Assembly (NCBI GenBank): GCA_002269645.1
Contig: NIVC01002962.1
Coordinates: 1 to 64,000, forward strand
From: Macrostomum lignano
Taxonomy: Eukaryota
Direction: 5' to 3'
DNA: 64,000 nt
In this document: positions 10,634 through 62,834 of the stretch, one piece after another
Numbering within the stretch: the stretch's first letter is position 1
Layout of the letters: each line of letters opens with the position of its first letter
Position numbers and translations under genes: made by a program
The notes under the pieces: model-generated
Databases searched by the model: none
Told to the model about the DNA's origin: nothing
The model's input: the letters and a program-made list of their open reading frames with translations, nothing else

Positions 10634-10654
10634 ACTGAGGACGATGACGAAACA

Positions 10655-10922
10655 GGGCCTTTTCATATTACCAATTCCAGAACCAGAATCGGTTCGGAAT
10701 TCCAAGAAAAACAGCAGTATAACTATTAAACTCTGTTAATATTTGACTGCCTTAACAACCTAACTTAGCACAATTTTTCACTTTCTTCTTGGTGATTGTG
10801 ACATTGTCATTCAATAATAAAAACTTTATAGTACGTATCTCCCTCTAGTTATGGAGACAAAAAGTTATACTTCACAAATTGGTTCTGGTTCTGGAACCAG
10901 AGCAAGCAATATGAAAAGGCCC
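10655..10922. mobile_element. PIF/Harbinger-like MITE, copy 2 (3-bp TSD ACA)
   Basis: Ends GGGCCTTTTCATATT and AATATGAAAAGGCCC; ACA on both flanks. Confidence 0.75.
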
Positions 10923-11160
10923 ACAGACAATCGTCATCAGTTAGTAAGCAGCGTCGTCACTTGCAAGCAGGCATACCATGGGATTTAAATCTTAAGATGA
11001 AATAATATTAACTAAGCAAAAAAATTTAAGGATAAAATAATAATAAGTTAAAGACAAATTTTTTGAAGTAGCTTCAAATTGTTTTTTTTGTATTTAAATT
11101 AAAAACAAAAAAGCTAATTTTTGCTTACGACTTTAGTTTTCGGTTTGTAGTAGGCAGTTC

Positions 11161-11858: not shown

Positions 11859-11980
11859 GGCAGTTCTTTAAATTTCAATGCCGTGTTAAATAAGACTGCT
11901 CGGCCGTCCGTCTGTCCAGATAAACTTTAGCTGTTGTTAGTGATTTTATCCCGCTAATTTCGTTCATTTGAGTTAAATCA

Positions 11981-21619: not shown

Positions 21620-21960
21620 CAGAAGTGACTGTATGTGACTGTATGATGAGGATTAGAAGTTTCTCTATGATGAGGATCATAAGCGACTCTTTAGTGAGGA
21701 TCAAGAGTGACTTTAGGGAGGAATAATATTGACTTTTTAGTGAGGATCAAAAGTGACTCTTTAGTGAGGATCAGGATTGACTCTATGGTGAGGATGAGGA
21801 GTGACTCTGGTGAGGATCAGGAGTGACTCTACGGTGGGGATCAGGAGTAACTATGGTGAAGATCGTGAGTGACCCTACGGTGGGACTCAGGAGGGACTCT
21901 AATGAGGAATAGGTTAACTCTTATGAGGATCAGGAGTGACTCTCCAATAAGGATTATGAG
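21620..21960. repeat. degenerate tandem repeat, unit about 24 bp (GACTCTATGGTGAGGATCAGGAGT-like)
   Basis: Repeated gtgaggatca/gtgactct motifs. Confidence 0.8.
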
Positions 21961-22231
21961 TAAATACTTAAGTTAAAATTTCAAATGTGCTCTTTTAGGT
22001 GAAAAATTATTAATCAATAAAGCATTTGTTTACGTGCATTGCTTCTACTTAGCTAGGCATATATACAAGCTAATTAAAACCTCACGTATTGAATCTGCTA
22101 GTAAACTGAGCTAACTAGCACAGTAGCGAAGATTTGCTTGATATCTTTGTATTTTCGTTCCAGAGCTCATAAGTCAATCGATATTCTGTCAATCTTTGAA
22201 TAAAACATCAAGTAAGATAAAAAACGTAAAA

Positions 22232-23890
22232 ATGTCGAATACTGAACAAGAAGCAACCAAATGCATCTCGCGGTTTTGCGAACGGACAGCTGATGGCGAA
22301 AGTCCCTTCTCTGGTTTTCCTTTGTGCCAAGAACATCTTGACGAAGATTTGCAAAGATGTGAAAATCGAAAGGCTGATATTCTTGAAAAGCTCGATAAGC
22401 TCTCTTGCAAGTTGGGGAGACAGTCGCTTCAGTTAGAGAAGCAGGCTTTGGCTATAGAAATCCAGGAGATTGCCGATATGTTCGATTCCATTCAAGAAAA
22501 TCTACAGCAGTGGAAAGAAAAACTTATTTCGAGTGTGCAGAACGTGCACGATGGTGTGTCTGACAGGCTTGAAATTGCATCTGAATCAGACGTATGCGCC
22601 AAAGACATAGCTACAGTGTCTAACTCTGGGAATATGCGCGACCTGATACAGCTTACAGTGTCCATGGAATCCTGGCTAGATGCTGCCACTAGAAAAACTG
22701 CTGAATTTGATCAAAAAAGAGCTCAGTTGCGACAGCGACAGAACAATAATTTTGGTATTCGTTCTGTCGGAGATGTCGCTGCTGGTGTCCAGCACTTGCA
22801 AAATTTGTTTGACAGGCATCTGAACGACGTGATGAAGACTTGCTGGCTTGATGATGGGGAAACTAAACCAACAGGAATGTTAGAGCAGGATTCTGAAATA
22901 GGCGATTTAACGAGCAAACCAACACATGTTGCAGCGTGCACTAACACTGCTGGATTTTTCGGCGATGCCTCAGGTCGGGTAGTTCGAGCTGACTCAGTTT
23001 GGCATGAAATCTCCCAAACGTTGCCACAGCCTTGTATTTTTGTGGCCTTTGAAAATCAGAGCGCCGACCATCTATTGGTACTGTCACTTGATGGTTCGGT
23101 GAGACTTAAATGTCAAGGTGAGTCAGTCAGCGGTCAAACCGCTATCAAAGGATTCGAGTGCGACAGTAGACGCCAGCTGTTGTATGTTGGCCGTGCAAAT
23201 CTTGTTTCTGTTGCTGACTTAAGTGGCACTCTGCTTCATACTATAGACGGTGAACGTATCAAGCGTCCTTTTGGTACCGTTCACGGCATGACAGCCAACT
23301 CTGATAAGTTGTTTATGCTTTGTGCGACGACAGGCGGCTTATTTTCAAGCAGTATCAAACAGTTAATGTGTATTAATAAAGATTCACTTCTAGTCGACTC
23401 CGAAATCAGATCTAGAGTATTTAACTGTTTAACATCTGCCTCTGTTGGAGTCGGACTACATGGCGGTAAAATTATACTATCGGATGCAAAATTGGTGACT
23501 CAAGGAAAAACTAGGAAGTACAAAACTTCGGTCTACAAGATTTGCAGTGTCAGTGGCGAACTAATTTGTTGCGTTAATTTTGTGAGTTCTTTGCTTGATG
23601 AAAATAGACACATGTGCCAAGTTTCGGTCTCTAACACTGGCTTCTTATTCTTGTGCAACTTGCCAACATTGAGAGTTTTATCTGGTTACAATTTTGAGAG
23701 TTTAGCTTCTACTTCTCACTCGGAAGCACCAAGCGATCTGGCTCTGCTGCAGTCGCAGATTATTGTGACAAGTACCGGTACTAATGTATTCTCGAGTCGG
23801 TCAAAATTGCACTGTTATAAGTTTCATGGTGAGTTGAAAATTATGCATGTATGTAAAATCCTCCACGGTGAAAATTTCAAGAACAGCTAA
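22232..23890 (+). CDS. RING-less TRIM-NHL-like protein, copy 1 (zinc finger, coiled coil, divergent beta-propeller)
   Basis: Single ORF; first ATG shared in position with paralogues at 22232. CISRFC-x15-CQEH, LEKQALAIEIQEIADMFDSIQENLQQWKEKL and IRSVGDVAAGVQHLQ align with five downstream paralogues. Confidence 0.85.
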   Translation: MSNTEQEATKCISRFCERTADGESPFSGFPLCQEHLDEDLQRCENRKADILEKLDKLSCKLGRQSLQLEKQALAIEIQEIADMFDSIQENLQQWKEKLISSVQNVHDGVSDRLEIASESDVCAKDIATVSNSGNMRDLIQLTVSMESWLDAATRKTAEFDQKRAQLRQRQNNNFGIRSVGDVAAGVQHLQNLFDRHLNDVMKTCWLDDGETKPTGMLEQDSEIGDLTSKPTHVAACTNTAGFFGDASGRVVRADSVWHEISQTLPQPCIFVAFENQSADHLLVLSLDGSVRLKCQGESVSGQTAIKGFECDSRRQLLYVGRANLVSVADLSGTLLHTIDGERIKRPFGTVHGMTANSDKLFMLCATTGGLFSSSIKQLMCINKDSLLVDSEIRSRVFNCLTSASVGVGLHGGKIILSDAKLVTQGKTRKYKTSVYKICSVSGELICCVNFVSSLLDENRHMCQVSVSNTGFLFLCNLPTLRVLSGYNFESLASTSHSEAPSDLALLQSQIIVTSTGTNVFSSRSKLHCYKFHGELKIMHVCKILHGENFKNS

Positions 23891-24949
23891 ACCATAAATT
23901 TAGCCGTTATTCATGGCTTTATTAGCTTAATTAGCTCGTAGCACGCTGTGTTTTAATAATTTGTGTTTTTACACTTCTGATAAGAAATTATGTAACACAC
24001 GCTTATGCAATTAAAGTAGTCTGTTCATCAAGTCAAGAGCTTCTGTTAACATTTGATTTAATGGAACATTGAATGATTTCGAATCTTTGTTGTCTATAAA
24101 GTTTCGAAGTTGTAAAGATGGGGATATTGTTGTTTTTATTTATTTCTAATTACAGTTTGATTATTTGTTCTTTTTAAGTGATTCAATTGAGTTATACGAG
24201 CCGTATTTATGTTAGTCGTAGCCCGCTATTGTAAATTATACGTTTAAGTGCCCAGGAATAGAAAAAAGGTAGTCGCTGATGTGTAGCTGTCTATACTCAG
24301 CAACATTGGAAAATTGCCATCACAGAAGATTCCGTCTGTGGTCGCCACTTTTCAAAGTGTAGGTAAAGTCTCTCAATCTTGCGAGTGACGCAACTTACAT
24401 GTAGCTACGCCACGCGACAACATTTAGGTTGAGGAATGAAGTGGGGGAATCTCGGTGTGCGAGGATTAGACGGATTAAAGCTACCCCTCAGTTTTATCGT
24501 ATCATTTATTTCAGAATTGTCAAAGATAAATGCTCACTGGTGCATATAGTGACGACTTTTCAATGTTGCTGAGTATACTTAATAGTTATTTATTATTCTA
24601 TACTGGGGTGGGATATTGGGATATTACAGGTTGTAGCTGTTACAGGGGTGTTTATTTATAGTTTAATCCTACTGTTTTGCTACCAAATTGTGACGGGCCT
24701 CTTTTGGGGAAATTATACTGCTGCTGTCTAATTTGTTATAAGGGGGGGGGGCGGGTCGGGGTTACTGGCTTTTACAAGAATTATTTTGGGAATTTCGTAG
24801 GATTTGGGGAGAATATGCAATTTCTACTACTAAAAGGAGTATGCTTTAAAGTTACTCCTGGTGGCGTGAGTGTCCGAGCGGCAAGACACTATATTTCTAC
24901 TCAGTCCGGATATCTAAGGAGGGGAAGGGGAATAAGGGCTTCGCGGTCG

Positions 24950-25290
24950 AAAAATCACATCGTCGAAAAGCATCCACCATCACAAGCTCGAAAAGTCATA
25001 AGCTCGAAAAATCATATCGTCGAAAAGTTTAGCAACCACCATCACAAGCTCGAAAACTCACAAGCTCGAAAACTCACATCGTCGAAAACTGATTTAGCAA
25101 CCACCATCACAAGCTCGAAAAATCATATCGTTGAAAAGTTAAGCAACCACCATCACAAGCTCGAAAAATCACATCGTCGAAAACTGATTTAGCAGCCACC
25201 ATCACAAGCTCGTAAAGTCATAAGCTCGAAAAATCACATCGTCGAAAAGTTTAGCAACCACCATCATAAGCTCAAAAAGTCTTAAAGAAT
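24950..25290. repeat. tandem repeat of ACCACCATCACAAGCTCGAAAAATCACATCGTCGAAAAGTTTAGCA-type units
   Basis: Several imperfect tandem copies; explain ORF 24677..25192. Confidence 0.8.
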
Positions 25291-25489
25291 TAATTATTTA
25301 TATTTATATTTATTCATATTTAAAGAATAAAAGTTGCTCTTAGAATAGTCTATGGCAAAAACTCAAGCCCTACTTATCACAGCTTCACAACAAGAGTAGG
25401 CTGGTGTGATTTCAATTCTTGCACCGATTTTTTAAACAAAAATGCTCGAATCGGCATTCTGTGTATATTCTGTGATTGTCGACCCACTC

Positions 25490-25660
25490 AGAACAATTTG
25501 TGTCGTTGAGCAAGACGCTTAACTCTGCATTGCTTCATTAACTATTAGCTTTAAAATGGATGCCAGCATTAGTTAGGGCAGTTGAAAGTGTGTGTCACCC
25601 CCAGTCCTTGGACTGACAGCCGTATGCAGCCTTCAGATGCGCTGCGCAAAAGCTGTGGTA
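25490..25660 (+). mobile_element. SINE-like element, same family as 19726-19945
   Basis: tttgtgtcgttgagcaagacgcttaactctgcattgcttc...cagtccttggactgacagccgtatgcagccttcagatgcgctgcgca matches the SINE body. Confidence 0.65.
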
Positions 25661-27411
25661 AAATCAGGTAATAGAAAGTGGTAAAATCAATTATTAGGGG
25701 TATAGGGGTGAAGTTATGTGTGATTATACGAGAGTTGACAAAAAACAAATATACAACTTTAAGCGAGAGGGGAGAGAGCGCAATCTGTGTCATACTGCCA
25801 TAAAAGTCAGAAAAAATAATAATTCTAATAATAATAATAAATAACAATTATTTTCATCTGGTATATTGTTTATTATTACAGCTATATCAACATCCATCCT
25901 CCATTACACAGCCGAGTGTTTTTTCGTTTCAAGCCGTAGCCAGCGGATGAGTTTCACTCTCATGGACAGACGCGGAACAAGCATATTTGAGCACTTACTC
26001 GTATTCACGTGTAAGCTAAATACGAGTAACATTTTTATTGACTCGGTTGAATTTTTTATCGAAGTGTATACAAACTATACTAATGACCCGTGTCCTTAAT
26101 GAAGTTTTCGTCTTAATAGTCTTAATTTAAGCTTTGTGTCCTCTGTTGCCTCCTTATCTTCATTTGTAAAGAATATTAGAATATCCAATTAAGTGAGCCT
26201 GTTCAAGTATTTTACTCTTAGCACTGAACTGATCAAATAAAAAATAAGCTCAGATATGCAAGCAGATAGCTTAGTAAGTTACTCGTTGCTAGTTAATAAG
26301 AAGGTAACGTTCGTTACTTCGTTACCGCTTATCAAAAAATTACCGATATATTGAAATTATATTAGTTAAAATGATCATAAAGTTTTTTTGGTAGCAGAAA
26401 AAGAAACAAAGCTTATTTTCAATTTCAAGTCAACTAAGGTATCCTATTTTATTTACTGCTCTACAGATTCGATTAAACGTACAGAAAGAAGCTTGTTTTG
26501 CCTACTGAAAGCAGCTAGTAGACTTGTTAGCATCGTGTTTTAATCGATCTCAATCAAACGGAAAAGTAACTCTAAAGTAACAAGTACTTATCGCTACTTA
26601 GTTTCTGGCACCGATAATAGAATGACTAAGGTATGCCACTCAAAAAATGCGCTCATTTACTCTCTAAGTATAGCGACAATAGTTTTTGCACTTAAACTTG
26701 TAAAACTAATAAATTTTACAAGACTTCTGACTTTCTGTAAGCAGAGTCTCACCAAACCCATTAATTGTCCTAGATTCTAAGTGATTTTTTATGAAATCCT
26801 AAAGGTCTTAAAGACTGAAGATAGCGCTCTTGATACCAGCAAGGCTGATGAAATTGTTACCTTATTTTCCTACTATTGTTTTTGTTGACGTTTATTTTCC
26901 TAAGAATTTATGTCATAAAATGTTGCTACTTCGTCCATCTCTGATACATGTATACGCGATTGCGATTTTTATGTATCCATTGATATGTTATACTATATGT
27001 TATATGTTATATCAACTCAACAGTGACATGAAAAGTTTTTAGTTCAGACTATTCTGAACATTTTTCTTTAAATTTTATTAGTAAGCATTAGTAGCGGAAA
27101 GTTAAGTTGATACTATGCTTAGTTTTGTGTTTATGATTTTATTTTATGTCGTAGCTTAACCTTTTCATGTAACGTTTTTTGCGTCTTGCATGCAGCCTTC
27201 TACATCTCTGTCAGATTCTTACAATAAATATGCCGCGCACAGCTGAATGAGTATCTACTAAATTCAATAGAAAAATTAATTGGTTCATTTTTGATGTCAT
27301 TTTTTTTCATATAAAACTAGTATAATACTCGTAATAATAAAAAACTGATTTACCTGACCAACTGCCCGGAAAGTGCCCGTCAACATAAGCTCATAAAGTT
27401 CATAAGCTCAT

Positions 27412-27697
27412 GAGCCCGAGTAGCCTATGCACAAAAATGACACGTCATTCTGCTCACAGTAATACCGGGAAGCTGGGTTTGGCAATAAGAGGGACACAAA
27501 TTGGACTTAAGAGAACGAGCAAGGGGATGGTTAGGGATTATTATGTCAACCTAAGCTCATAAAGTAGAGTCCCTAATTATCCCATTGCTTGTTTTTTCCT
27601 ATCCCAAGTCGAATTTGCATCGCTCTTTTTGCCAAACCTAGCTTCCTAGTGTCATTGTCAGTAGAATATTATTTGTGTACATAACTTACTCGGGCTC
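27412..27697. mobile_element. foldback or MITE-like inverted repeat
   Basis: GAGCCCGAGTA/TACTCGGGCTC and GGAAGCTGGGTTTGGCAATAAGAG/CTCTTTTTGCCAAACCTAGCTTCC pair; no clear TSD. Confidence 0.55.
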
Positions 27698-28162
27698 CAC
27701 TTTATGATCCTAAGTTAACAGCCCATTTAAAGTGCCAAATGGAAAGATGTGTAAATTTTTATGCAGCGTTCTAGCCTACTTTTCAAGCTTTGAAGTACGT
27801 ATAGGTTTTAGTTCAGCCAATTTGCCAAGAAAATGAGCCCACGAGCGTATATTTTGTCCTTATTAGGTATACAATGTATACGCAGTTTGCTAGGGACGAT
27901 TTAAAGCCGTTCTTTCTACGTTGTTGATATACGAGCTATTACAACTGCTGTGTAAAGTAATTTCGATGGCATATGATATAGAAAATTCATAAAGCTGCTG
28001 AAGCTTCTTAAATCCAAGTAGTGATGTTTCTTTTGATAGTTATTTTCTCTTTAATATTTGGTAGGATTTGTTTATAGATTTCTCTAGCAACTATTGAACA
28101 CATATGGGTATTAATTTCAATAAATTGAAGGCTAACCGGTTGCTTTAAATTGTTTTCTTTGC

Positions 28163-29761
28163 ATGCCGAAAATGTCAAGTGAACAGCAAATCTGCATTGC
28201 TAGATCCTGCGATCGTCCGGCTGAAGACACGAGTCCATACTCTGGTTTTGCTTTCTGTCGGCAGCATCTTGCCACTGAGATTCAGCGTCTAGAGAAACGA
28301 CAACAAGAACTGCTAGATAAGCTTGACAAACTTAGCAACTGTTCAGAAAGACAGGCAATGCGTCTTGGTCAACAAGTTTTGATTGTTGAGATGCAGGAGA
28401 TTACAGACATGTTTGAAGCTGTTCATAATAGACTGCACCAGTGGAAGGATCGGTTGGTGTCGCATGTGCAAAAGATCCATGACAATATTGCTACCACGCT
28501 TAAGGATGTAGACGAGGCCGATGCTTGTAAGCAGGAACTAATGCAGGCTCGGGATTCGGGACAGCTGCGCAAAGTGATGGAGCTTGTTGTTTCCATGGAA
28601 TCATTCGCTGATGACGCTATGGACCGATTGCCAGAGCATGAAGAACTTCGAGCCGAATTGAAGCAAGATGCTCCCAATCGAATCATTGGCGATGTGTCAG
28701 TTGGAGTACAGCAGCTTCAGTTCAAGATCGATCGACATTTCACAGATTTGACACAGCACTGTAAGCTTAAAGACATGCCTTCTGATGACTCACCGCAGTG
28801 CAATGTGTGCAAGTTCGATAGCACTGTCTCCGAGCTTCCAAGTGGACCTCGGTACATAACTTTGTGTCAAAACACGAAAAATTATGCTGCCAACCATACA
28901 GGAGTGATTATTCCTGCTAAACAAGCTGATAAGAGAAGTTTAGAACTGCCAGAACAGTGCTTATTTATAGCATTTGATAGGAACAAGGCGGATTATTTGT
29001 TGGTGATATCACTAAACAGACGTGATTCTATCGATGAGCTAAAGTATCGCTGCGAACAGTTTAACTGGAGCAAGGACATATATGGCATTCATTGCGACAG
29101 CAATCGGCAGCAGCTGTTTATAGCTCAGGATCACGCTGTGACAGTGACAGACCTGTGTGGCCGAATTGTTAGAGTGGTGACTTCTGATCTGTTCGGTTGG
29201 CCTGTTGGAAAGATTTCTGGAATCTCTTGCAACGGAGACAAAGTTTTTGTGCTAGTGTTGGGCAGCCGCAACCAGAAGGTGCATTCATTTAGCAAGAACT
29301 CCGGAAATTTGGAGTCCAGCCTTGATTTAAAAGGCCATTTTGATGGCGACTTGCGCAAAATCTGCCTGCAAGAGAGCAAGATTTGGCTAGCTGATTGGAA
29401 ATACCCGAAAGTTTACAAAGTTTGCGGCATTTCTGGGAAGTTAATTGAAACCATTGATTGCATTGAATCATGTGTTGGTGATATTAAGAAAACGAAATTT
29501 TCGCCAATACACATTTGCACTGATGACAGAGGCCTTTTGTTTGCTAGCCTGATGTCGGCAAATAGCGTAGAAATTTTTGTTGGAGATTCCGTTATTATTA
29601 AGTTTCTGGTAGATTTCAACATCGAAGGCGAAGAAAACGACGACTGCTTTGATCGCCCGGCAGACATGATCATTTTTAACGACGAGACAAAGAACTGCAA
29701 GAAGTTAATAGTTTGCGATTATGCTAACGAGAGGCTCTGTATTTTCTTGCTTTCCACTTAA
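28163..29761 (+). CDS. RING-less TRIM-NHL-like protein, copy 2 (532 aa)
   Basis: Intronless ORF; CIARSC-x15-CRQH, coiled coil, and a C-terminal NHL-like blade FDRPADMIIF...LIVCDYANERLCIF. Confidence 0.88.
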   Translation: MPKMSSEQQICIARSCDRPAEDTSPYSGFAFCRQHLATEIQRLEKRQQELLDKLDKLSNCSERQAMRLGQQVLIVEMQEITDMFEAVHNRLHQWKDRLVSHVQKIHDNIATTLKDVDEADACKQELMQARDSGQLRKVMELVVSMESFADDAMDRLPEHEELRAELKQDAPNRIIGDVSVGVQQLQFKIDRHFTDLTQHCKLKDMPSDDSPQCNVCKFDSTVSELPSGPRYITLCQNTKNYAANHTGVIIPAKQADKRSLELPEQCLFIAFDRNKADYLLVISLNRRDSIDELKYRCEQFNWSKDIYGIHCDSNRQQLFIAQDHAVTVTDLCGRIVRVVTSDLFGWPVGKISGISCNGDKVFVLVLGSRNQKVHSFSKNSGNLESSLDLKGHFDGDLRKICLQESKIWLADWKYPKVYKVCGISGKLIETIDCIESCVGDIKKTKFSPIHICTDDRGLLFASLMSANSVEIFVGDSVIIKFLVDFNIEGEENDDCFDRPADMIIFNDETKNCKKLIVCDYANERLCIFLLST

Positions 29762-32245
29762 ACCGATGGATCAAGCTTAGCTCAAGTAAAGCGGTTATTG
29801 ACCGAAGAATGTGAATATCGTAACTCGTCGTTTGTAACAGTTTTCTCAAAACACATTCTTTTACTTGAAGATATATGTATACCTAATATTTCATTTATAA
29901 ATTTTATAAATATTTATATTAATCTTAATTTTGGTGCTTGCTTATCTTAAATCTTTTTAATTGCAAGCAGAATGTTCAATCGCCATAGCGTACAGAATTT
30001 TTCACGTTTTTTGCTACGCTGCATTTTTACATATCTATTGTACTTTCAGTACCGCATGGCAAGTGTTTGTCGTATTTAACAGTTAAAATTTATTTCTTTA
30101 TTTATTAGTAATCGTTACACATTGTTTTTTGGTTCCAAGTAGCTCGTACTTATACTCAGCAGCAGTCAAAAGTGCTATCCAACTTCCACTTCTCAATTAA
30201 AATTCAACCCACGAGTTTTACGTAACTATGTAGCCAAGTCAAGGGACAGTAACAGGGTAACAGTCTATCTCAATAGAGTGCTTTATTTTTAGTTTTTTTC
30301 GGTAATGTAGGAAAATAGCCAAATCAATTTGCAAAATTACCGATTCGGAGTTACCAAAGACCAAGTTAAGTGCATCATAGTTAATTTAAGTAGCAGAATC
30401 GTTTGGTTCTGTATACTTTTTATGCCCATGTACTCTGCCAAGCGCAGGCAGTCTTCTCTTTGCTCAAGTGCGTCTTTCAATCGCTGCTTAATCCTCAGCG
30501 GATATTCTGGCTCGGGCGGCAGCCATTTACTGTTGAGTTGGCATTGTCCCACCAGGTTTGGCCTTTTGTATCCATCGTTGTCACTGCGCAACAGATTAGC
30601 GCTCTTATTGGCTAATTTACAATTTGAACTGGTGTTTGCACTTGACTTGGTTAGATAATTAACTGGTTTTTGACCTTGCATTGTTATAGTATCCTCAGGA
30701 GAATTTTTATAACAAAAAACATCAGCCCTAAAGGCCAGCTATATCGCCTAAGATATCTGTATCTCCTTTGAGCTTTGGCATCAACGCCTCCCTTTAGGCC
30801 ATTATTTAATCCTATTTCTCCCTTCGATCTACCTTTGGCTTGGCCTACCAAAAACTTCAAAATGAACCTTCTAAATGAAACTTCCAAATATCTCATTAAC
30901 ACTCCCTAAACCGCCACAGCATTTCAGCAATTCCCCCATAAGCTTTGACATGTCAGGGATCCTCCCTGAGAGCCTCAGCAGATTTGGCTATTTGCCAGAT
31001 AAACTGAATTTTATGCATTTGGGATGTGGAACTTAAGTTGGATATAGTACTACGTGACCGAAAATGCCTATAAAGTGTGTACAGTTTTTGTAAGCTATCT
31101 AAAGTGCAAAATTTTCGACTTGCGTGAAGGGTAGCACTAGCACTTTTGACTATTGCTGAATATACGCGCCAGAAAATTCAAGATTTTCTGTCGTTGTGGT
31201 GCTACTAAACTTAAGACACAATAAGTACGTCGTAAAATATTAGACTCATTTACTCGCCATATATTTTTGTAGGGTCCCACCTCGAGAACAAACTCTATGT
31301 GCCTTGCGTCCTATTGTCATGCAACTATATAGTCCATTGTGTAATAATTTACGCATGCTCAACATCTGCATCGTAGCTCTCGTCATTGAGGCACAGTGCT
31401 TTTCGAAAGCTGTAAATCTTACACTGCGTCCCATTGCTAGCCGTGTGTGCAGGCCTAAGTTGTCTCGTCTTGTTTGTGGGGTTGTTTGAAAGGCTCATTT
31501 ACAGGTATATAACTTTAAGTGAGTTGTGCGTACTTTTACGCTTAGAATTCACTCGTAATTAAAATAAAGCAAGTGTATCTTGCTTCTCTTGCTTGTATTT
31601 TTTGTGTGCTTATTATTGTAAAATTAATTCTTTTGGCGCTTTTGCAGCATGTTTAATAATAATTTGATAAGTTTAATACCGAGTGAAAAAGTTTGCTTAA
31701 AAGTTCGGAATGCTTGTGCTTTTATTTTGATTCAACTCCAAACTTCTTTAGCTGTGTATTTCAACATCTAGCTAGGTTATTGCAATATTAAATGAAGTTT
31801 TAGTATATGTTTGCCTTTATAATAGATCGTCCACTGAAAAGTTGCAAAGATTTACTTTGATACCTTAACTAATTGTAGCTCGTATCTAACTGATAGCTAA
31901 ATAGAACTTCCAATGTGTGTACTAAACTTGTGTGCTTCGAACGGTTAAGACCAAAAGGACTAAAAACTGAGAAACTGTTTGTGGCCTATTGCAAGGTCTA
32001 AACTCACTTTAAGACTCTAATGTACGAGCTCGTAGAAGCACGCAGCAGTTCCCTGAAATTGTCTACTAGCTAGCCGCCCTGACCCCTGATCCTTGAGATG
32101 AGATACTCGTAGAGCTAGTAGAGTTGCAGTGTGGTGACAATATAAGATGTCGCCTACTGATTACTTGTACTTGCATTGGTTCAGACTAATTACAGAAAAA
32201 TGATTGAATTTTTGTTTATATGCATGCCGGACGCTAACCGCAGCC

Positions 32246-33883
32246 ATGTCCAGCGATACCCACCGCATGTGCATTGTCAGATCCTGTTACCAAGCGTCTG
32301 ATAGCGTGAGTCCTTATTCCGGATTCGCTCTGTGTCAGCAACATCTTGGTAGCGATCTTGAACGGCTTGAACAGAGAGAAACTGAAGTTTTAAATAAACT
32401 GAATACTGTCGCGGCTAATTCGGAGAAGCAAACTTTTCGACTAGAACAGCAAGCGATTCAAATAGAAATGCAAGAAATTGACGACATGTTTGAATCTGTG
32501 CAGGCGAGGCTCCAGCTGTGGAAAGAGCAGCTGGTTTCCAGTGTCCAACAGATCCACGATGCATTTGCTAGTAGGCTGAGAGATGTCGCCGATGCTGAGC
32601 ATTGTCTGAAAGACATTCATTCGGCACGGTCCAACGGGAAGTTGCGCAAAGTGATGAAGCTAATACTGTCTGTTGAAAGCTTTGCCGATGAAGCCGTCGA
32701 TAGATCGGCAATTTTTGACGACTTTCGAGCAAGGCTTCGTGAAATTACAATGGAACGCGATAAGGATAATGACTCTGATGACGATGATGGTGATGAAGAT
32801 GAAGACGAGTCTTCGAAAACTACTATCTATCGATGCATTGGTGATGTGTCATCTGAGGTGCAGATGCTACAATCACTGATTGACAAGCATATGCATAGTG
32901 TAATGGAGTATTGCCAAATTGACGGCGAATCGCCAGACAAGCCAGTTTGTCCGCCTTTAAAGCAGTCAATTACTCTTCCAGGAGAGCCGCGTTATCTAAC
33001 TCTGTGTACGAACACAAGTGGATACGTGTGCAACATGAATGACTGCGTGGTTTCGCTCAAGTCTGTTGCGAACGCCTCTTATCGAGAATTACCAATGCCT
33101 ACTATCTTTGTTGCGCTAAGGCCAGGTAGCAGTTCTTTACTGCTAGGCGTTTCTTTTAACATGCGTCGCAAGTTTAAACTAATCTGCGAAAAATTCGACT
33201 GGAACAAAGCTATTACTGGTCTTCATTGTGACAATTTGCGTCAGAGATTATTTTTAGCTCAGGAGCACGCAGTGACAGTGACTGATTTGTGCGGCCAAGT
33301 TATCAGAGTAGTTGCTACAAGCCAATTAGGCTTGACTGCAGGACGAATCTCCGGTATGTCCTGCAATGGTGACAAAGTGTTTGTAATTGTGCTGGGAACT
33401 AATCAACAAGTGCTTTCGTTTAGTAAGGCCTCTGGAGTGCTCGAATCCTGCCTCGATGTGAGCGCCTACGGCGAAGGTACATGTGGTCTGCGAAAGCTGT
33501 GTCTGCAAGAGGGCAAGATCTGGCTCGCTGACTGGAAGTCATCGAAGGTGCTAAAAGTTTGCAGCATCACTGGACAGTTGATTTCAACTGCGAAAGGCGA
33601 TTTTCGGTCTTCTATGACGGAAATAATGCCTCTGCACCTAGCAAGCGACGATTATGGTCGACTGTACGTCAGCGAGCTGAAGAATCACAGCGTTCAGTCC
33701 ATTTCAAGCGCAACTGACAATGACGAATTTTTATTTGGAAGTCCAGGCGAAGCGGGTAATAGCGAAGAAGTCTTCAATAGGCCTGCCGATGTTATTGTTT
33801 TCAACAGTGAGGCTGTTGGCTACAAGATTCTAGTCGTAGCTGATACTAACAACATGCGCTTGTGCGCTTTTCGTCTTGTTTAA
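32246..33883 (+). CDS. RING-less TRIM-NHL-like protein, copy 3, with an acidic insertion
   Basis: Intronless ORF, first in-frame ATG at 32246; CIVRSC-x15-CQQH; NHL-like FNRPADVIVF...ILVVADTNNMRLCAF. Confidence 0.88.
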   Translation: MSSDTHRMCIVRSCYQASDSVSPYSGFALCQQHLGSDLERLEQRETEVLNKLNTVAANSEKQTFRLEQQAIQIEMQEIDDMFESVQARLQLWKEQLVSSVQQIHDAFASRLRDVADAEHCLKDIHSARSNGKLRKVMKLILSVESFADEAVDRSAIFDDFRARLREITMERDKDNDSDDDDGDEDEDESSKTTIYRCIGDVSSEVQMLQSLIDKHMHSVMEYCQIDGESPDKPVCPPLKQSITLPGEPRYLTLCTNTSGYVCNMNDCVVSLKSVANASYRELPMPTIFVALRPGSSSLLLGVSFNMRRKFKLICEKFDWNKAITGLHCDNLRQRLFLAQEHAVTVTDLCGQVIRVVATSQLGLTAGRISGMSCNGDKVFVIVLGTNQQVLSFSKASGVLESCLDVSAYGEGTCGLRKLCLQEGKIWLADWKSSKVLKVCSITGQLISTAKGDFRSSMTEIMPLHLASDDYGRLYVSELKNHSVQSISSATDNDEFLFGSPGEAGNSEEVFNRPADVIVFNSEAVGYKILVVADTNNMRLCAFRLV

Positions 33884-34779
33884 ATCGTTGGATCAGTTAA
33901 GCTTTTTCGTCTGGGTGCTTACGAACACTTGCTAAATTTTACATAAAACTTTTCTGATGCGTAGATTTGACGAATTTTACTAACCTAAATTTCTTTGATG
34001 ATTCCTTTTAAAACGTTTTTACTCCTCAATTTTTTCTTTCCTGTTGCTAATATTTTTTTAAATTTCTACTGTTATTAATTTTTAGTCCTGCTTATTAAAC
34101 GATTCTGTTCTACTTGAAGATGGCGAGAAGTTAAGTTTGATGTTGCATTTCTGACCAGATGTTAAAATGTTCTTGCAAATACCTACGATTGTTTTTTTAA
34201 CAATTAGAAATTTCGATTGAATTTTTGTTCCGAATTACTGCTTAAACTTTTCTAGAAACTGACTGGTGCAGATACGAGTATATACGCTATATTTTGCTAT
34301 ACGAGTGTAAATGCAAGATTGTAAGTATTAGTCCAATAATGTGCATTTTTATAATTTATAGAACGTCTCAAACTTGCTTTTAATGTGCAATAAAATATCT
34401 GAAAGTAGATAGCTATAGCTTGTATGCTTTCAAAAATACAGTTGTAATCGTTCTAGTTTATCTAAATAAACTGGCTACTAATTCTTCCTTAAAGGAAAAC
34501 TCGACAAAGATAATTTATTTGGACGTAAAACTGTTTAACTTAATACATCTACTTTAGACGCCCTTAGAGATGTACTTTTGTGATTCAATGGTTTTGTGAT
34601 TCAACACTTTTTTTTCTAAATCATATTATAATAGTGACACAAGAGTGTTATGCCACTAAAGCGGACCACTAAAGTGGGGAAAATTCAGAACCATTTTCCG
34701 ACAGTTGATTCAAAGAGTATATAGGCTAAGAAACTTAGACTACTTTACAAGTTTCACATTGTATTTTTCTACCTCACTC

Positions 34780-36367
34780 ATGAGAAAAATGAAGCGCAAA
34801 TACTGCAGTACAGAAAATCTAAATGAAAATAAATGCTCGTCTAAATTTTGCAACCATCAAGCTATGGGTATGAGTCCACTTACTGGACTGCCATTCTGTG
34901 AACAGCATCTCACAAGTGAACTAGAAAAGGTCAAAAAGCGTCGAACAGATTTATTAGAAAAACTTGAGACCGTCATCGCTGAGTCTGAGAGACGCTCGCT
35001 GCGACTTGAGCAGCAGGCCCTGGCCACAGAGTTGCAGGAGGTCACGGACATGTTCGATGCAGCTCAGGAGCGACTGCAGCAGTGGAGAGACCGGCTGATG
35101 TCGCGTGTGCAGGAGGCGCACGATGCAGTCGCCGAGAGGCTGCGAGACGCGAGCCAAGCAGAAGTGCGCCAAGGAGGTGAAGGATGAGAACTCTCAGGTC
35201 GAGGACTGTGGAAAGCTGTTTGCCTCAGTAGAGTCGTGGCTCGACGAGGCCTGCAGTCGGTCAGAGAAGTTCAGCCAGCAACGAGACGAGCTGCGCGATC
35301 GGCAGAGCCGTCAGCTGGACGATCAGGCAGCAGCAGGTACTATTTTGCGGTGTGTGGGAGACGTAGCAGCAGGTGTTGAGCAGCTGCAGTTCGAGATCGA
35401 CAGACATCTGACAGGTGTGATGCGGCAGTGCTGGCTCGATGACAGAGAGGCGTCTCCTGTGCTCCGGCCTTCGGGCTCGATCTCGCATCTGCCGAGCGGT
35501 CCTCGGTATCTGGCCCTGTGCAGCAACACTCGGGGCTTCGCAGCCGACCCGTCGGGTCGCATAGTTCGAATCGACGCTTCGAATGAGGCGTGCGAGCCTC
35601 TGCCTGAACTTTGCGTCATTGTGGCATTCCATATAAATTCAGTTGAATATCTACAAATGATTTCACTTGATGGAGGCCTTCGACTTCCATGCGAGATTGA
35701 CTTGGATTGGAATAGTTTTATATATGGTGTCCGGTGTGACAATATTCGCCAAAATTTGTATGTAGCGCAAGGCGAAGTGGTTAGTGTCGCCGATTTGTCT
35801 GGTCGTATGCTTCGCCAGATCAGGGATACTGAAATTGCTGAAGCTAACTGCGTTATCTGCTCAATCGATTGTAACTCAGATAAACTATTTGTCCTGACAA
35901 CAACTCCGAATCGACTGGTTGGTTTTAACAAGGATTCTTGGGAGATTGAACTGTCAGTCGATATTGATTCCGTATGCCCTTCAAGCGGGGTTCACAAGTT
36001 ATCAATTGTTAACTGCAAGGCTATTTTATCTTATCAGGGTTGCTCTCGAGTTCTTCGAGTCTGTTGCATAACTGGTCAGCTATTAATGTCGTATCCAGTT
36101 GATTATCGCCTTATTAAAAAGATTCGTCGACCTATGCAAGTTGCTTTTAATAGGCGCGGCCTCCTGTTTGTGAATGAGAACCGCCAATTTGTTCGAGTTT
36201 TGACTAACGATGGAGTTTGTCTACAAGTTCTGTGTAGACCAGATGGTCTAGGCAGACAGCAGTTTAATTGTGCGATGGGTGTCCTAGTCTGCACTGAGAC
36301 CAGTCCGAACGTGCTTCTTGTTGCCGATTCTGTTGATGAGAAGCTGTATGTGTTTGATATCGTTTAA
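34780..36367 (+). pseudogene. RING-less TRIM-NHL-like copy 4 with a 2-nt deletion frameshift at about 35164 (pseudogene or assembly error)
   Basis: ORFs 34705..35187 and 35105..36367 join into one paralogue. Copy 4 reads GCAGAAGTGCGCC where copy 5 reads GCAGAAGAGTGCGCC and copy 6 GCAGAGGAGTGCGCC; no other lesion seen. Confidence 0.75.
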
Positions 36368-37953
36368 AACTTTTGTAATGTTTCAGTTTTTACAATGTAG
36401 TGAGGGTATGGAGCTAAAAATCGACAATTTTCTTATCTAGAGCGATATCCTTAGGTTTTGTGTGAAAAATTCAACATCTATGCTAAAACACATGTGACAA
36501 CAAGGAGATGGCTACTAACTTTTCAATCTAAACTGACGTAGCTACCAAACCAATTTTTCATAGAAATTGCATAGAAACTGCCCAGTCCAGGAAGTGTCCG
36601 AGTATGCGTCATGCTTGCTTGCTCGTACTTACATATACTTGACTTGGCCCGTGCCGTGAGCAGTCCTGACTCCACTTACGAAGTTACATACAAGAGTGTA
36701 GAAATACGTTAAGAAAATTAAACGCAACCTTTGCTCTGATTTTATGATTTTTAACTTTGAGTATCTTCTTTAAGATTCACAAGTTAGCAAACAGCATTAC
36801 CCATTTCGCTCCACCTGCCTTTTAATGTATCTTCCTTGGACCAATACTTTCAATACGACTGTAAATTGATTTTATATTTTAATAGCATGCGATAAAAATT
36901 TTTGTTCGCTGTAGTGTGAGCAATGATATTTTTTGTACGGTACACACTATTTTGTAAGTAGGTGGGAATCTTCCAAGTTCCAATATTGCAACAAATGTTC
37001 GTTTTAAATGTATTCAGACAAATTTTCGGCTCTAAAATCTGATGCCTGTGTGTAAATTGATTTGCTAAGTTCTTTTTTTAAGTAGCGTGCAAAAGGCAGC
37101 ATTATCAATCTATTTCTATTGGTGTACTACGAGTACAAATAAAAAGTGTATTCAGCATTCATCGCTCAGCTTCTACGATCAAGTAACGCAATAGTTATTC
37201 CTATTCTATTTGATTTGTCTTTTTCGTTTTCTAGCTTATTATACAGGATTTAGTTTAAACTTGGACTTTAAAAATATTTCTTTAATTTTTTAGGATGAAG
37301 TTGTAGAAATTATTTGCTTTATTCAATCATAAACTGTATGAGCTATGCTATAAAATAGTTTTTCAGTGCTGCCCTAATTTTTACCAGTCATTTCAAAGAA
37401 TCAAGTAAAACAAATTCCCTCAATTTTAAGAACGCGCTGTTATTTAATTATTTTGCATTTTTCATAACAGTTCCTAAACTAACGCATAAGTTATTTATCA
37501 CCAAAACTTTAAAGTTTTTTGTCACAACCTTTTGAATACTGCCTCGTTCTACTGTTTAGTTTTGCTACAGTACAAACAAACGAAACTTGCATGAAACGAT
37601 CGTCGTTCAGGAAAACGGGTGGGCTATATTAAAATTTGTGCATGTAATCATTCGCTTAAAAGTAACTTCCAATTTGATAAACCCTGGCGTAGCTAGGCCA
37701 TAATAATTATTATAAAAACCGTCTCTAAACAAAAAACAATCTGATACGACCTATCTACATTAAAAAAAGCATTTTTGTTTAGGAATGAGTCGGATTACGG
37801 GCAAATATGCATGTATTTTTGCTCTTTAGGCCAAATTAGTTGATTTTTTGGTTGCCATTTTTATTGCTTCATTTTTTAGTCTAAATAATGCATTTAAGAA
37901 AACAAATACAAGTTAAAAACGTTATAAAATCCCTTTCTGACCAAAAAGAAAGA

Positions 37954-39537
37954 ATGACCTCAACCGCCGACTCCACCGAATGCTGCTCGTCAAAATTCTG
38001 TGGTCAGACGGCAGCCGGTGTAGGCAGGCTCACCTGTCTGCCTTTCTGTGAGAAACATCTTCAGGTTGACATGAAAAGACTGGAAAAGCGGAAAACAGAT
38101 CTGCTTGAGAGACTTAAGACCGTCATCTCTGAGTCTGAAAGACGCTCGCTCCGACTGGAGCAGCAGGCCCTGGCCACAGAGTTGCAGGAGGTCGCGTACG
38201 TGTTCGATGCAGCTCAGGAGCGACTGCAGCAGTGGAGAGACCGGCTGATGTCGCGTGTCCAAGAGGTGCATGATGCAGTCGCCGAGAGGCTGCAAGACGC
38301 GAGCCAAGCAGAAGAGTGCGCCAAGGAGGTGAAGGATGAGAACTCTCAGGTCGAGGACTGTGGAAAGCTGTTTGCCTCAGTAGAGTCGTGGCTCGACGAG
38401 GCCTGCAGTCGGTCAGAGAAGTTCAGCCAGCAACGAGTCGAGCTGCGCAATCGGCAGAGCCGTCAGCTGGACGATCAGGCAGCAGCAGGTAATGTTTTCC
38501 GGTGTCTGGGAGACGTAGCAGCAGGTGTTGAGCCGCTGCAGTTCGAGATCGACAGACATCTGACAGGTGTGATGCGGCAGTGCTGGCTCGATGACAGAGA
38601 GGCGTCTTCCGTGCTCCGGCCTTCGGGCTCGATCTCGCATCTGCCGAGCGGTCCTCGGTACCTGGCGCTGTGCAGCAACACTCGGGGCTTCGCAGCCGAC
38701 CCGTCGGGTCGCATAGTTCGAGCCGACGCTTCGACTGAGGCGTGCGAGCCCCTACCGGATGTGTGTGTCATTGCTAGTTTTGAGCTAAATACTGTAGCTT
38801 ATTTACTACTAATTTCACTTAAGTCCGATGTTCGACTTCGCTGCGAGACCAATTTGAATTGGGCCCGCCGTATTTACGGGCTTCAGTGTGACAGCAAGCG
38901 GCAGCATGTGTACGTTGCGCAGGCTCAAGCTGTGACCGTGATCGACCTGTCTGGTACCGTGATTCGCAGTGTCAGCAAAGCCGATTTTGTTAGCACTGTT
39001 GGTCCAATCCGATCCATTTATTCCAGCTCAGACAAATTGTTTGTATTGGCTACTGACCCCTATCGATTATTTTGCTTCTGCAAAGATTCGTGGCAATGCG
39101 AGCTGTTGACTGATTTTTCTGAACTGACTTCTGGTTGCATGGTCAGCAGTTTTTCAGTTCATGGTAGCAAAATTCTTTTGTGCGATAGAACTTGCGGTCG
39201 GATTCTACGAGTGTGCGGAATCAGCGGTCAGCTACTAAAGTCATATACCCTATCTGGTGAAGTTGTTGACAGTTTTTACCGCACACTGCATCTAGCACTG
39301 AGCAACTGTGGCCTGTTATTTGTTAGCGATCTAAAACATCACGTTGTAAAAGTTATGAAGTCCAGCGGGCCACTTATTCAGACAGTCGGTACTCCGGGTC
39401 AGTGCGGTCAAGTAATAAATCATCAGTTTAATGGGCCTGCCGGTATTGTTATTACCGGTGACACGAGCTCGAATCAACTTTTTGTGGCTGATTCAAACAA
39501 CAAAAGAGTTTGCATTTTTGAGCTTACGTTTATGTGA
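37954..39537 (+). CDS. RING-less TRIM-NHL-like protein, copy 5
   Basis: Intronless ORF (upstream in-frame ATG at 37888); CSSKFC-x15-CEKH; NHL-like GTPGQCGQVINHQFNGPAGIVITGDTSSNQLFVADSNNKRVCIF. Confidence 0.88.
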   Translation: MTSTADSTECCSSKFCGQTAAGVGRLTCLPFCEKHLQVDMKRLEKRKTDLLERLKTVISESERRSLRLEQQALATELQEVAYVFDAAQERLQQWRDRLMSRVQEVHDAVAERLQDASQAEECAKEVKDENSQVEDCGKLFASVESWLDEACSRSEKFSQQRVELRNRQSRQLDDQAAAGNVFRCLGDVAAGVEPLQFEIDRHLTGVMRQCWLDDREASSVLRPSGSISHLPSGPRYLALCSNTRGFAADPSGRIVRADASTEACEPLPDVCVIASFELNTVAYLLLISLKSDVRLRCETNLNWARRIYGLQCDSKRQHVYVAQAQAVTVIDLSGTVIRSVSKADFVSTVGPIRSIYSSSDKLFVLATDPYRLFCFCKDSWQCELLTDFSELTSGCMVSSFSVHGSKILLCDRTCGRILRVCGISGQLLKSYTLSGEVVDSFYRTLHLALSNCGLLFVSDLKHHVVKVMKSSGPLIQTVGTPGQCGQVINHQFNGPAGIVITGDTSSNQLFVADSNNKRVCIFELTFM

Positions 39538-40241
39538 CTTAACTTGAAGACTTAAAGCAATTTATTTTGCCGCTGTTTGATAGATCAGCAACAAAGGTGC
39601 TCTTGACCTTGCGCTTTCTAGTTGAGAGCTGTGTACAATGTACAGGGTGTCAGAACGCCCACCCTATTTATACATTGCAGCTTCTAACTGCTTGCCCTAT
39701 TACATTAGGGCGAACTCAAGCCCTGCTGCAATTGTGATGTCCTTATTCAAGCGCCTGGAAAAGTTTGTTAATTTTAAGAAGTCTACTGAGATTTAGAATA
39801 TAAGAATCTGTATTCACTATGTACATTATGTTTTGTATTGAACAAATTTATTTTCATTATTCTTGCATTATTAAGCAAATGCAAATTCTCAAATTAAAAA
39901 ACTACAAGTAAGGTAGCTTTTGATAGTCTTTTGTATACCGTCTTTGTTGTCTATTTATCGATTTGTACGAGTGTAGTTGTTTAAAGTACATTGAACTTCG
40001 GTGCTGCAAGACAGGCATTCCATCTAGAGTAGCAATAAGAAATATTGTACGTACACTGGAATTGTTAAAGCAGAACATTTTTTTTTAAAACTACTTAACT
40101 GTTTCCGTTTAGTTTAAATTTCCTAGGCTTTACATTTTAACTACTGTCTACAAGATTATTTGTATGTTTGCTTCTTTCGTACGGTAATCACACATCTAAT
40201 CATATACATGTATTTCTCACGTTTCATGTGACAGATTCAGT

Positions 40242-41858
40242 ATGGAGCCAGAATCCGACAGCTCCTGTGCTGAAAACTTTGAAAGCTGTACATCAAAGTT
40301 CTGCAATCAACGGGTAACGTCGCTCTGCCCACTCACTGGCTTGGGATTCTGTGAGCAGCATTTCAGCGTTGAAATAAAGAAGCTGGAAAGGAGGAAGACG
40401 GATGTTCTAAAGAGACTCGATACGGTCATCTCTGAATCTGAAAGACGCTCGCTGCGACTGGAGCAGCAGGCCCTGGCCACAGAGTTGCAGGAGGTCGCGG
40501 ACATGTTCGATGCGGCTCAGGAGCGACTCCAGCAGTGGAGAGACCGGCTGATGTCGCGTGTCCAAGAGGTGCACGATGCAGTCGCCGAGAGGCTGCAAGA
40601 CGCGAGCCAAGCAGAGGAGTGCGCCAAGGAGTTGGAAGAGAAATGCAACGATAGATTTTGCAATAAAGACAGCGTAAAGCTTATCGTCTCCCTAGAGTCG
40701 TGGCTAGATGAGGCCTGCAGTCGATCGGAGAAGTTCAGCCAGCAACGAGTCGAGCTGCGCGATCGGCAGAGCCGTCAGTTGGACGATCAGGCAGCAGCAG
40801 GTACTGTTTTCCGGTGTGTGGGAGACGTAACAGCAGGTGTTGAGCAGCTGCAGTTCGAGATCGACAGACATCTGACAGGTGTGATGCGGCAGTGCTGGCT
40901 CGATGACAGAGAGGCGTCTCCTGTGCTCCGGCCTTCGGGCTCAATCTCGGATCTGCCGAGCAGTCCTCGGTACCTGGCGCTGTGCAGCAACACTCGGGGC
41001 TTCGCAGCCGACCCGTCGGGTCGCATAGTTCGAATCGACGCTTCGACTGAGGCGTGCGAGCCCCTACCGGATGTGTGTGTTGCTGTGTCGCTTACTGAAA
41101 AGGATGTTGAATATATTCTCCTCATGTCGCTAGATGGTAGCATTCGTTTTCGATGCCAAAGCGAGCTGGATTGGAGCAGCCGAATATTTGGTCTTCAGTG
41201 TGACAGCAGTCGTCAGCAGTTGTATGTCGCCCAGGCTAATGCAGTGACAGCGATAGATTTGTCGGGTCAGGTTGTTCATCTCATTACGAGGTCGGATTGC
41301 GGTGAAGTATTCGGCACCATTTGCTCGGTAGACTGCTCTTTGGATAAAATATTTATTCTCAGTGAAAAACCTTACTGTTTAGTTGCTTTTAGCAAAGATT
41401 CGTTTGAGTGTGAGCTAAATGTAGACATTTCTCCATTCAGTACTGTTGATGGCGTCCGCAAAGTATCACTTCAAGGTCATAAAGCGCTTCTTTGCAACCA
41501 AATCAGCGGTCAGTTGATGCGAATTTGCTGCATCACTGGTCAGCTCATAATGGCTTATCCTGTCAAATCAAATTATCAAGAAAGATTTTTTAATCCGCAG
41601 CAAGTACTTTTCAATGGTCGTGGCCTGCTGCTTTTTTCTGACTCTCACTGCGTCCGAATCATGGCCCATAATGGAGCCATCCAGCAAACTCTAGGGACTC
41701 CGACTGAACCTGGTTGTGGCGATCTGCAGTTTAAATCCCCTATAGGTACATGTATCGTGACTACAGAAAAGACGAATCCTCACAAACTTTTCTTTGCTGA
41801 TTTGGAGAACCTAAGAATTTGTGTTTTTGAATTGTATAATCCTATACTTCCATCTTAG
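40242..41858 (+). CDS. RING-less TRIM-NHL-like protein, copy 6 (538 aa)
   Basis: Intronless ORF; CTSKFC-x15-CEQH; NHL-like GCGDLQFKSPIG...LFFADLENLRICVF. Confidence 0.88.
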   Translation: MEPESDSSCAENFESCTSKFCNQRVTSLCPLTGLGFCEQHFSVEIKKLERRKTDVLKRLDTVISESERRSLRLEQQALATELQEVADMFDAAQERLQQWRDRLMSRVQEVHDAVAERLQDASQAEECAKELEEKCNDRFCNKDSVKLIVSLESWLDEACSRSEKFSQQRVELRDRQSRQLDDQAAAGTVFRCVGDVTAGVEQLQFEIDRHLTGVMRQCWLDDREASPVLRPSGSISDLPSSPRYLALCSNTRGFAADPSGRIVRIDASTEACEPLPDVCVAVSLTEKDVEYILLMSLDGSIRFRCQSELDWSSRIFGLQCDSSRQQLYVAQANAVTAIDLSGQVVHLITRSDCGEVFGTICSVDCSLDKIFILSEKPYCLVAFSKDSFECELNVDISPFSTVDGVRKVSLQGHKALLCNQISGQLMRICCITGQLIMAYPVKSNYQERFFNPQQVLFNGRGLLLFSDSHCVRIMAHNGAIQQTLGTPTEPGCGDLQFKSPIGTCIVTTEKTNPHKLFFADLENLRICVFELYNPILPS

Positions 41859-62803: not shown

Positions 62804-62834
62804 GTAAAATTTAGGATTTTTCAAGCTAATTTTA

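Follow-up and report, generated by a model that had tools for sequence, protein, structure and literature searches.

Introduction

TRIM32 and Drosophila Thin (Abba) are composed of a RING, a B-box, a coiled coil and an NHL domain and contain no filamin domain. RING and B-box are equally found in TRIM71/LIN-41, TRIM2, TRIM3 and Mei-P26, the first three of which also possess a filamin domain. In Brat (brain tumor of Drosophila) and NCL-1 of C. elegans, the RING is missing, and both TRIM-NHL proteins act through their propeller as non-catalytic translational repressors, with Brat containing two bona fide B-boxes and being encoded by a conserved single-copy gene. The B-box is a zinc-binding domain whose seven to eight ligands coordinate two zinc ions, and TRIM proteins contain one or two of them. 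The finTRIM genes of fish and the primate TRIM5/6/22/34 cluster encode tandem paralogues with a shared coiled coil and a divergent C-terminal binding domain of the B30.2/SPRY type, which have kept the RING, evolve under positive selection and differ in copy number between haplotypes. Here we describe an array of six paralogous genes, termed c1 to c6, from the flatworm Macrostomum lignano, whose products combine an N-terminal finger, long helices and a predicted NHL propeller. The array is located between positions 22232 and 41858 of contig NIVC01002962.1 (GenBank assembly GCA_002269645.1), of which the first 64,000 nucleotides constitute the window analyzed in this study and define all coordinates of the array.

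With TRIM32 and Thin, the flatworm family shares a helical region leading directly into a predicted six-bladed NHL propeller without a filamin domain, and the propeller of Thin is both its best profile match and among its top structural matches, but a RING or detectable B-box is absent and replaced by a single Cys3His finger. With TRIM71/LIN-41, TRIM2, TRIM3 and Mei-P26, it has the fold of the NHL domain in common, whereas their RING, B-box and filamin domains were not detected. The lack of a RING and the combination of a putative zinc-binding module and a presumed coiled coil with an NHL propeller recall Brat and NCL-1; however, the two B-boxes of Brat contrast with one four-ligand finger and its single-copy gene with about 27 divergent clusters and tandem arrays, and RNA binding would be ascribed to the family by analogy. 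Finally, the array resembles the finTRIM and TRIM5/6/22/34 clusters as a series of tandem paralogues with a similar coiled coil and divergent C-terminal domains whose copy number varies, in this case between assembled versions of the locus, yet its C-terminal domains are of the NHL type, a RING is absent and the copies are ancient, with a ratio of nonsynonymous to synonymous divergence (dN/dS) below one. We consider 'RING-less TRIM-NHL-like' a fair description of the appearance of these proteins.

Results

Architecture of the predicted proteins

The six copies are encoded on the plus strand by open reading frames (ORFs) at 22232–23890 (c1), 28163–29761 (c2), 32246–33883 (c3), 34780–36367 (c4), 37888–39537 (c5) and 40242–41858 (c6), in agreement with an earlier note on this DNA that was made from its letters alone. 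In this contig, five of them are intact and span 532–552 residues, in a window that contains nine ORFs of at least 300 residues; the longest ATG-initiated ORF in 100 shuffled versions of the window was 194 residues long. The motifs quoted in the earlier note for the finger (C-x4-C-x15-C-x2-H), the coiled coil (LEQQAL..E.QE..DMF..Q..LQQW) and the linker (RxxGDVxxGVxxLQ) are present in all copies.

The C-terminal half of the protein is best described by a model of c5, the one copy for which an AlphaFold2 prediction was obtained, based on an alignment of nine family sequences. In this model, residues 241–549 (38608–39534) are entirely composed of β-strands, 26 in number, with a predicted local distance difference test score (pLDDT) of 80–94. 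A Foldseek comparison with the PDB returned the NHL domains of TRIM3, Thin, TRIM2, Mei-P26 and TRIM71 as top matches (E-value around 1e-12), which extend over the entire target with a template modelling (TM) score on the target of 0.71–0.75, compared to 0.55–0.61 for seven-bladed WD40 propellers. The same group of proteins was retrieved by a search of the PDB with a family profile, where the NHL domain of Thin (6.8e-18) precedes TRIM71 (7.6e-14), TRIM2 (1.8e-8) and, more weakly, Brat (7e-4), with NHLRC2 and TRIM3 also being matched and E-values for the group formed by TRIM71/LIN-41, TRIM2, TRIM3 and Mei-P26 ranging from 7.6e-14 to 2.7e-7. On the level of single repeats, PF01436 is found above its gathering cut-off of 20 in c3 (26.2 bits, E-value 7e-6) and c5 (24.9 bits), and the first four blades have diverged beyond what Pfam detects. 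Since the model of c5, the ranking of structural matches and the profile matches agree, we assign the C-terminal domain as a predicted six-bladed propeller of the NHL type, with two canonical blades at its end preceded by four divergent ones. The architecture of finger, long helices and NHL-type propeller that had been proposed from the letters thus withstands scrutiny, including the structure prediction recommended in the earlier note.

The preceding region is predicted to contain three helices in c5 (residues 55–149, 155–199 and 211–232), which comprise about 180 residues and run straight into the propeller with no intervening filamin domain. We presume that this layout resembles the coiled coil of TRIM proteins with its fold-back linker. 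On the sequence level, the N-terminal profile and Pfam found weak generic matches to coiled-coil families, and no similarity to TRIM coiled coils was detected by comparison of the profile with the PDB.

Each protein starts a few residues ahead of the Cys3His finger and thus lacks an N-terminus resembling a signal peptide. Among 24 family members, the three cysteines and the histidine of the finger are the sole invariant columns of the N-terminal part, and together with several residues of the propeller they are invariant throughout the family. The finger and the start of the following helix are predicted with high confidence (pLDDT 92), and a search of the PDB with this model by Foldseek gave nothing significant, B-box1 of PML appearing at rank 50 with an E-value of 5. 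None of 24 isolated fingers matched the Pfam family zf-B_box at E-values up to 10, and a profile of the N-terminal part retrieved no TRIM protein from the PDB, its matches being confined to apolipoprotein-like and other generic helical proteins. With Pfam searches of whole proteins and isolated fingers, profile comparison and the predicted structure all below significance, we have rejected the assignment of the finger as a B-box, and this name, used in the earlier note, finds no backing in any search. Two observations hint at a degenerate half of a B-box: two distant members are named 'B box-type' in UniProt, and the C-x2-C-x15-C-x2-H spacing of distant members such as P0025 is that of the site-1 ligands of B-box2. 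No Pfam family match to a RING was obtained in the six copies or 17 relatives, as the description of the family as RING-less had implied, and no filamin domain was found by Pfam in the members searched. The automatic 'RING-type' names of the members P0162, P0163 and P0180 in UniProt are not backed by Pfam. With regard to RING and B-box, the family consequently falls outside the definition of TRIM proteins. Compared to the seven to eight ligands of a B-box, only four are conserved in the finger.

Distribution of the family

A search of 5.8 billion proteins with c6 identified four matches, all annotated as 'hypothetical protein' of Macrostomum lignano. Positions 25123–51858 of the window were found to be 100% identical to their encoding contig, NIVC01002962.1 of assembly Mlig_3_7, with matching coordinates. 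When 1.84 billion cluster representatives were searched exhaustively by profile, an N-terminal hidden Markov model matched 42 sequences, corresponding to about 27 full-length clusters at 50% identity, and the remaining profile matches are giant NHL-repeat proteins aligned only at their last blades. All named members belong to M. lignano. Further members are located on short contigs of the datasets IMG 3300040775 and 3300040801, DNA metagenomes of brackish microbial mats from the Etang de Berre in France (PMC8605020). These are 27–37% identical to the M. lignano members, and one contig of IMG 3300040775 carries an uninterrupted family ORF of 533 residues, which was split by the prokaryotic gene caller. 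The presence of relatives on DNA of the microbial mats places the family in at least one other organism. A metagenome scan with the member P0013 yielded no confirmed relative.

Two further loci of M. lignano each contain three single-exon members, one beside a sulfatase gene and the other beside a kinase gene. In neighbour-joining trees, c2 pairs with c3, and c1 joins a group of c4, c5 and c6; the tree of the N-terminal part unites all six as a monophyletic group, therefore pointing to local tandem duplication, as had been anticipated in the earlier note, which had called for such a census and phylogeny. We have found no description of the family, its locus tags or NHL and tripartite-motif proteins of Macrostomum in the literature, and the family is thus undescribed, as had been supposed, and lineage-restricted.

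Age, selection and gene conversion

Every pair of copies shows saturation at synonymous sites (proportion of synonymous differences, pS, 0.75–0.83), and the duplications are thus old. In the propellers of c4 to c6, nonsynonymous divergence (dN) calculated by the method of Nei and Gojobori is about 0.5 at a synonymous divergence (dS) of at least 2, equivalent to a dN/dS of 0.16–0.27. Compared to a collinear sister contig (NIVC01000168.1), the dN/dS of the propeller is 0.06 in c3, 0.12 in c4, 0.45 in c5, 0.40 in c6 and about 0.6 in c1, in each case based on small counts, and the coding sequence (CDS) of c2 is identical in both contigs. The N-terminal part of c1 shows a ratio above one, which rests on very few changes. 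As the ratio for the propeller remains below one in every comparison, the sequences suggest no positive selection at the level of domains within the limits of small counts, and we regard the array as maintained under purifying selection.

A pronounced feature of c4 to c6 is a tract of about 900 bp, from around codon 59 to codon 263, in which the three genes are 90–100% identical in nucleotide sequence. This tract encompasses the coiled coil, the linker and the first propeller strands and extends over positions 34876–35769 in c4, 38038–38955 in c5 and 40329–41267 in c6 on the plus strand, the latter containing an unconverted patch at residues 134–156. On both sides, including the finger, identity drops sharply to 40–70%. 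The synonymous divergence follows the same pattern, with values of 0.03–0.09 in the linker, 0.3–0.6 in finger and coiled coil and at least 2 in the propeller. Since selection on the protein cannot homogenize synonymous sites, the tract is attributed to gene conversion or recombination, which accounts for the apparent contrast of conserved N-terminus and divergent propeller in c4 to c6. Selection acting on the propeller was considered as an explanation of this contrast and is rejected on these grounds. In c2 and c3, which lack the tract, amino acid identity is 50% in the N-terminus and 48% in the propeller. A reading of the propellers as hypervariable is therefore not supported, given the age of the copies and the conversion in c4 to c6, and the dN/dS by domain, for which the earlier note had proposed codon models, shows by these counts no excess of nonsynonymous change in the propeller.

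Transcription, introns and origin

The GenBank annotation of the Mlig_3_7 assembly consists of RNA-seq-derived transcripts only (PMC5730564). It contains models for c1, c2, c3 and c4–c6, and since models of this kind derive only from RNA-seq, the array is transcribed; the earlier note would have given up its proposal for untranscribed copies, which is not what the models covering the array indicate. Genes of M. lignano contain 4.9 introns on average (PMC5730564), and the single-exon CDSs of the array are thus unusual for this genome; CDSs of this kind are found in all three arrays and on the environmental DNA contig. The annotated mRNA of c1 has one 3' intron, with its donor (G|GTGAGT) at 23828/23829 directly after the conserved C-terminus; in this model (CDS 22184–26099, 600 residues), an AT-rich terminal exon (25866–26099) takes the place of the 20 residues with which the ORF ends. 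The claim of six single-exon ORFs consequently holds for five copies in this contig, but not for c4, which is frameshifted, and it is qualified by the intron in the mRNA model of c1.

Neighbouring paralogues of about 35% identity carry common locus-tag prefixes, such as Mlig012638 g4, g5 and g6. A common prefix is given to transcriptional units that cluster at 95% identity, each of which may contain more than one gene (PMC5730564). As adjacent paralogues of this low similarity share a prefix, the names, from which alone this is deduced, hint at multi-gene transcriptional units covering the arrays. Scans of upstream regions and polyadenylation signals contained nothing diagnostic of trans-splicing.

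With respect to a retrogene origin, which the earlier note had proposed, the first kilobase downstream of each copy contains no run of at least eight A and no A-rich 20-mer, and no intron-bearing parent gene was found. In copies of this age, with saturated dS, such hallmarks would have decayed. A retroposition of the founder gene is possible but a retrogene origin unsupported, and the expansion within the array has proceeded by duplication of DNA.

Other versions of the locus and current gene models

The sister contig NIVC01000168.1 is arranged collinearly to the window and contains an intact reading frame for each of the six copies. Its identity to the window is mosaic, with 94.5% in c1, 98.4% in c2 to c4, around 95.5% in c5 and around 91% in c6, a pattern suggesting that the duplicated chromosomes of the DV1 line have exchanged sequence by recombination or conversion. 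In a third version, NIVC01004991.1, position 33289 of the window, which lies within c3, is directly followed by position 41817 at the end of c6 (positions 15103–15108 of the sequence compared). The 8.5 kb missing from this version comprise c4 and c5 together with the 3' part of c3, of which 353 residues are left, and nearly the whole of c6. The junction shows a filler of four nucleotides (ACAG) and a microhomology (ATTTG), and the loss reflects a deletion allele or else an error of assembly.

The GenBank models for c4 to c6, which cover 35123–41858 of the window (423 residues) and 10001–14504 of the piece of NIVC01000168.1 that was compared (533 residues), are chimeric. They begin in one paralogue and end in another, with the switch located inside the tract of 90–100% identity. 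Because these chimeras were created by the homogenized tract, we advise against using the current models for c4 to c6 in their present form.

Individual copies and surroundings of the array

Among the six copies, c1 (552 residues) has diverged furthest; its last blades are degenerate, and it carries an unusual tail beyond 23828, where the C-terminus conserved in the family stops. It is flanked by minisatellites, one just upstream (21635–21943) and one just downstream (24947–25285). Others are located at 432–815, 1220–1883, 18741–19159, 56351–57405 and 62585–63319; their units measure 24–33 bp and 62 or 111 bp, and several yield long spurious ORFs on both strands. The ORF of c2 encodes 532 residues and is annotated as a single-exon CDS (28187–29761, 524 residues); about 470 bp upstream, an imperfect palindrome of 300 bp (27412–27697) is 68% self-complementary. 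For c3 (545 residues), the annotated single-exon CDS extends over 32267–33883 (538 residues), and its linker contains an acidic insert. In c4, a deletion of two nucleotides around 35164/35165 (GAAG^TGC, where c5 and the sister contig have GAAGAGTGC) separates a 5' piece (34780–35187), comprising the finger and the first coiled-coil helix up to the loss of the frame around 35164/35165, from a 3' piece in the +1-shifted frame (35105–36367), in which homology to the family starts around 35165 and which contains the remaining coiled coil, the linker and the propeller. In c5 (549 residues), the finger at 37984–38058 has C33, C38, C54 and H57 as its ligands, and the helices lie within residues 55–232; in c6 (538 residues), the ligands of the finger at 40287–40361 are C16, C21, C37 and H40. 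Antisense ORFs within c4 (35323–35931) and c6 (40787–41143) are not shared by the other copies and were therefore taken as chance.

A self-comparison of the region between 20 and 45 kb detected no similarity between spacers, as the earlier note had remarked, and a tblastn search of the window found no further fragments of the family, including between the copies. Both neighbouring genes are multi-exon in the annotation, consistent with their description as intron-rich. Upstream, a gene with AIRS and AIRS_C domains ends near 20404, and downstream, a gene of the BAR-PH-ArfGap-Ank-SH3 type (1264 residues) starts at 44586 and extends beyond 51858, with its ArfGap and Ank ORFs at 58290–59777. The range of this ASAP-like gene contains an ORF of 767 residues on the minus strand (50881–53184; annotated product 875 residues) without Pfam match, apparently a nested gene. 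Rfam and tRNA scans of the window detected nothing.

Discussion

We regard the locus as an ancient array of RING-less finger/coiled-coil/NHL paralogues that would act as non-catalytic dimeric adaptors, with RNA as their likeliest target, a reading to which we assign a probability of roughly 0.55. The array has grown by old local duplications of DNA and has been retained by purifying selection in a transcribed state, with gene conversion still homogenizing the coiled coil and linker of c4 to c6, and with indels and deletions differing among the assembled versions. Without a RING, the proteins are not expected to be ubiquitin ligases on their own. They would instead serve as adaptors, most likely dimerizing through their coiled coil, with the propeller of each paralogue binding its own target. 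By analogy to Brat, LIN-41/TRIM71 and Mei-P26, RNA appears as the most likely target, followed by proteins. Several observations weigh against this interpretation. The helical region, which would mediate dimerization, is modelled with low confidence in the c5 monomer (pLDDT about 50), and the net charge of the propellers is heterogeneous, with isoelectric points of 5.4–8.7, at odds with a uniformly basic RNA-binding face; these values argue against one shared basic surface of this kind and in favor of targets specific to each paralogue. The NHL domains of TRIM2, TRIM3 and Thin, which rank among the top structural matches, bind proteins rather than RNA, c1 appears under weak constraint in comparison to the sister contig, c4 is broken in this contig, and we have found no data on binding, localization or expression of the family in the literature or its supplements.

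The preference of these known NHL domains for proteins, including cytoskeletal or motor proteins in case of TRIM32/Thin and TRIM2/3, forms the basis of a competing explanation, which is possible if rather unlikely, namely that the paralogues are protein-binding adaptors with cytoskeletal or motor targets, or RING-less partners that heterodimerize with RING-bearing TRIM-NHL proteins to redirect or block them. It draws on the profile match to Thin and the structural matches to TRIM3, Thin and TRIM2 as the best of their kind, on the acidic character of several propellers and on the missing filamin domain, which is a feature of TRIM32/Thin. However, at an identity of 12–18%, the ranking of NHL domains does not discriminate between these relatives, and heterodimers with canonical TRIM proteins appear speculative for a coiled coil with no detectable similarity to theirs. 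The proposal of the earlier note, a diversifying cluster of innate-immune or nucleic-acid receptors with variable propellers under positive selection, is improbable. The lineage-restricted expansion in tandem arrays, the variation in number and integrity of copies among assembled versions, the difference in charge between propellers and the somewhat higher dN/dS of c5 and c6 compared to c3 and c4 would fit such a cluster, but the ratio is below one in all comparisons of the propeller, the saturation of synonymous sites identifies the copies as ancient and not as a recent burst, N-terminus and propeller have diverged equally in c2 and c3, and the contrast in c4 to c6 is explained by a conversion tract that also homogenized synonymous sites. 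Neither the Pfam search nor the window revealed an immune-related domain or neighbour, and an immune role is thus unsupported.

Even less probable, to the point of being hardly credible, is that the array is a decaying remnant of transcribed pseudogenes or neutrally drifting duplicates. The frameshift in c4, the loss of c4 to c6 and truncation of c3 in NIVC01004991.1 and the degenerate last blades of c1, together with its ratios in propeller and N-terminal part, point in this direction, yet five ORFs of more than 530 residues have stayed open despite saturated synonymous sites, far above the maximum found in shuffled sequence, the sister contig contains six undamaged copies, no family member deviates in the finger ligands or in several residues of the propeller, and the dN/dS of c3 to c6 against the sister contig lies between 0.06 and 0.45. 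Going beyond adaptors with one target each, conversion might serve a combinatorial recognition specific to macrostomids, by keeping coiled coil and linker nearly identical and thus permitting heterodimers that pair diverged NHL propellers into many bivalent specificities, with arrays that may be co-transcribed and trans-spliced and with targets that may be RNAs, including those of transposons or viruses. We consider this idea a long shot.

Brat, Mei-P26, LIN-41 and NHL-2 are NHL-propeller proteins that act as central regulators of stem-cell and germline fate, and M. lignano is a model for stem cells and regeneration in which RNAi and transgenesis are established. The paralogues described here, which we consider as putative adaptors with RNA as their likeliest target, provide a clean example of gene conversion confined to a domain, where the coiled coil is homogenized and the finger and propeller are not. 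As a large, undescribed and lineage-restricted expansion, the family thus offers a series of NHL propellers that have diverged in nature on a common scaffold.

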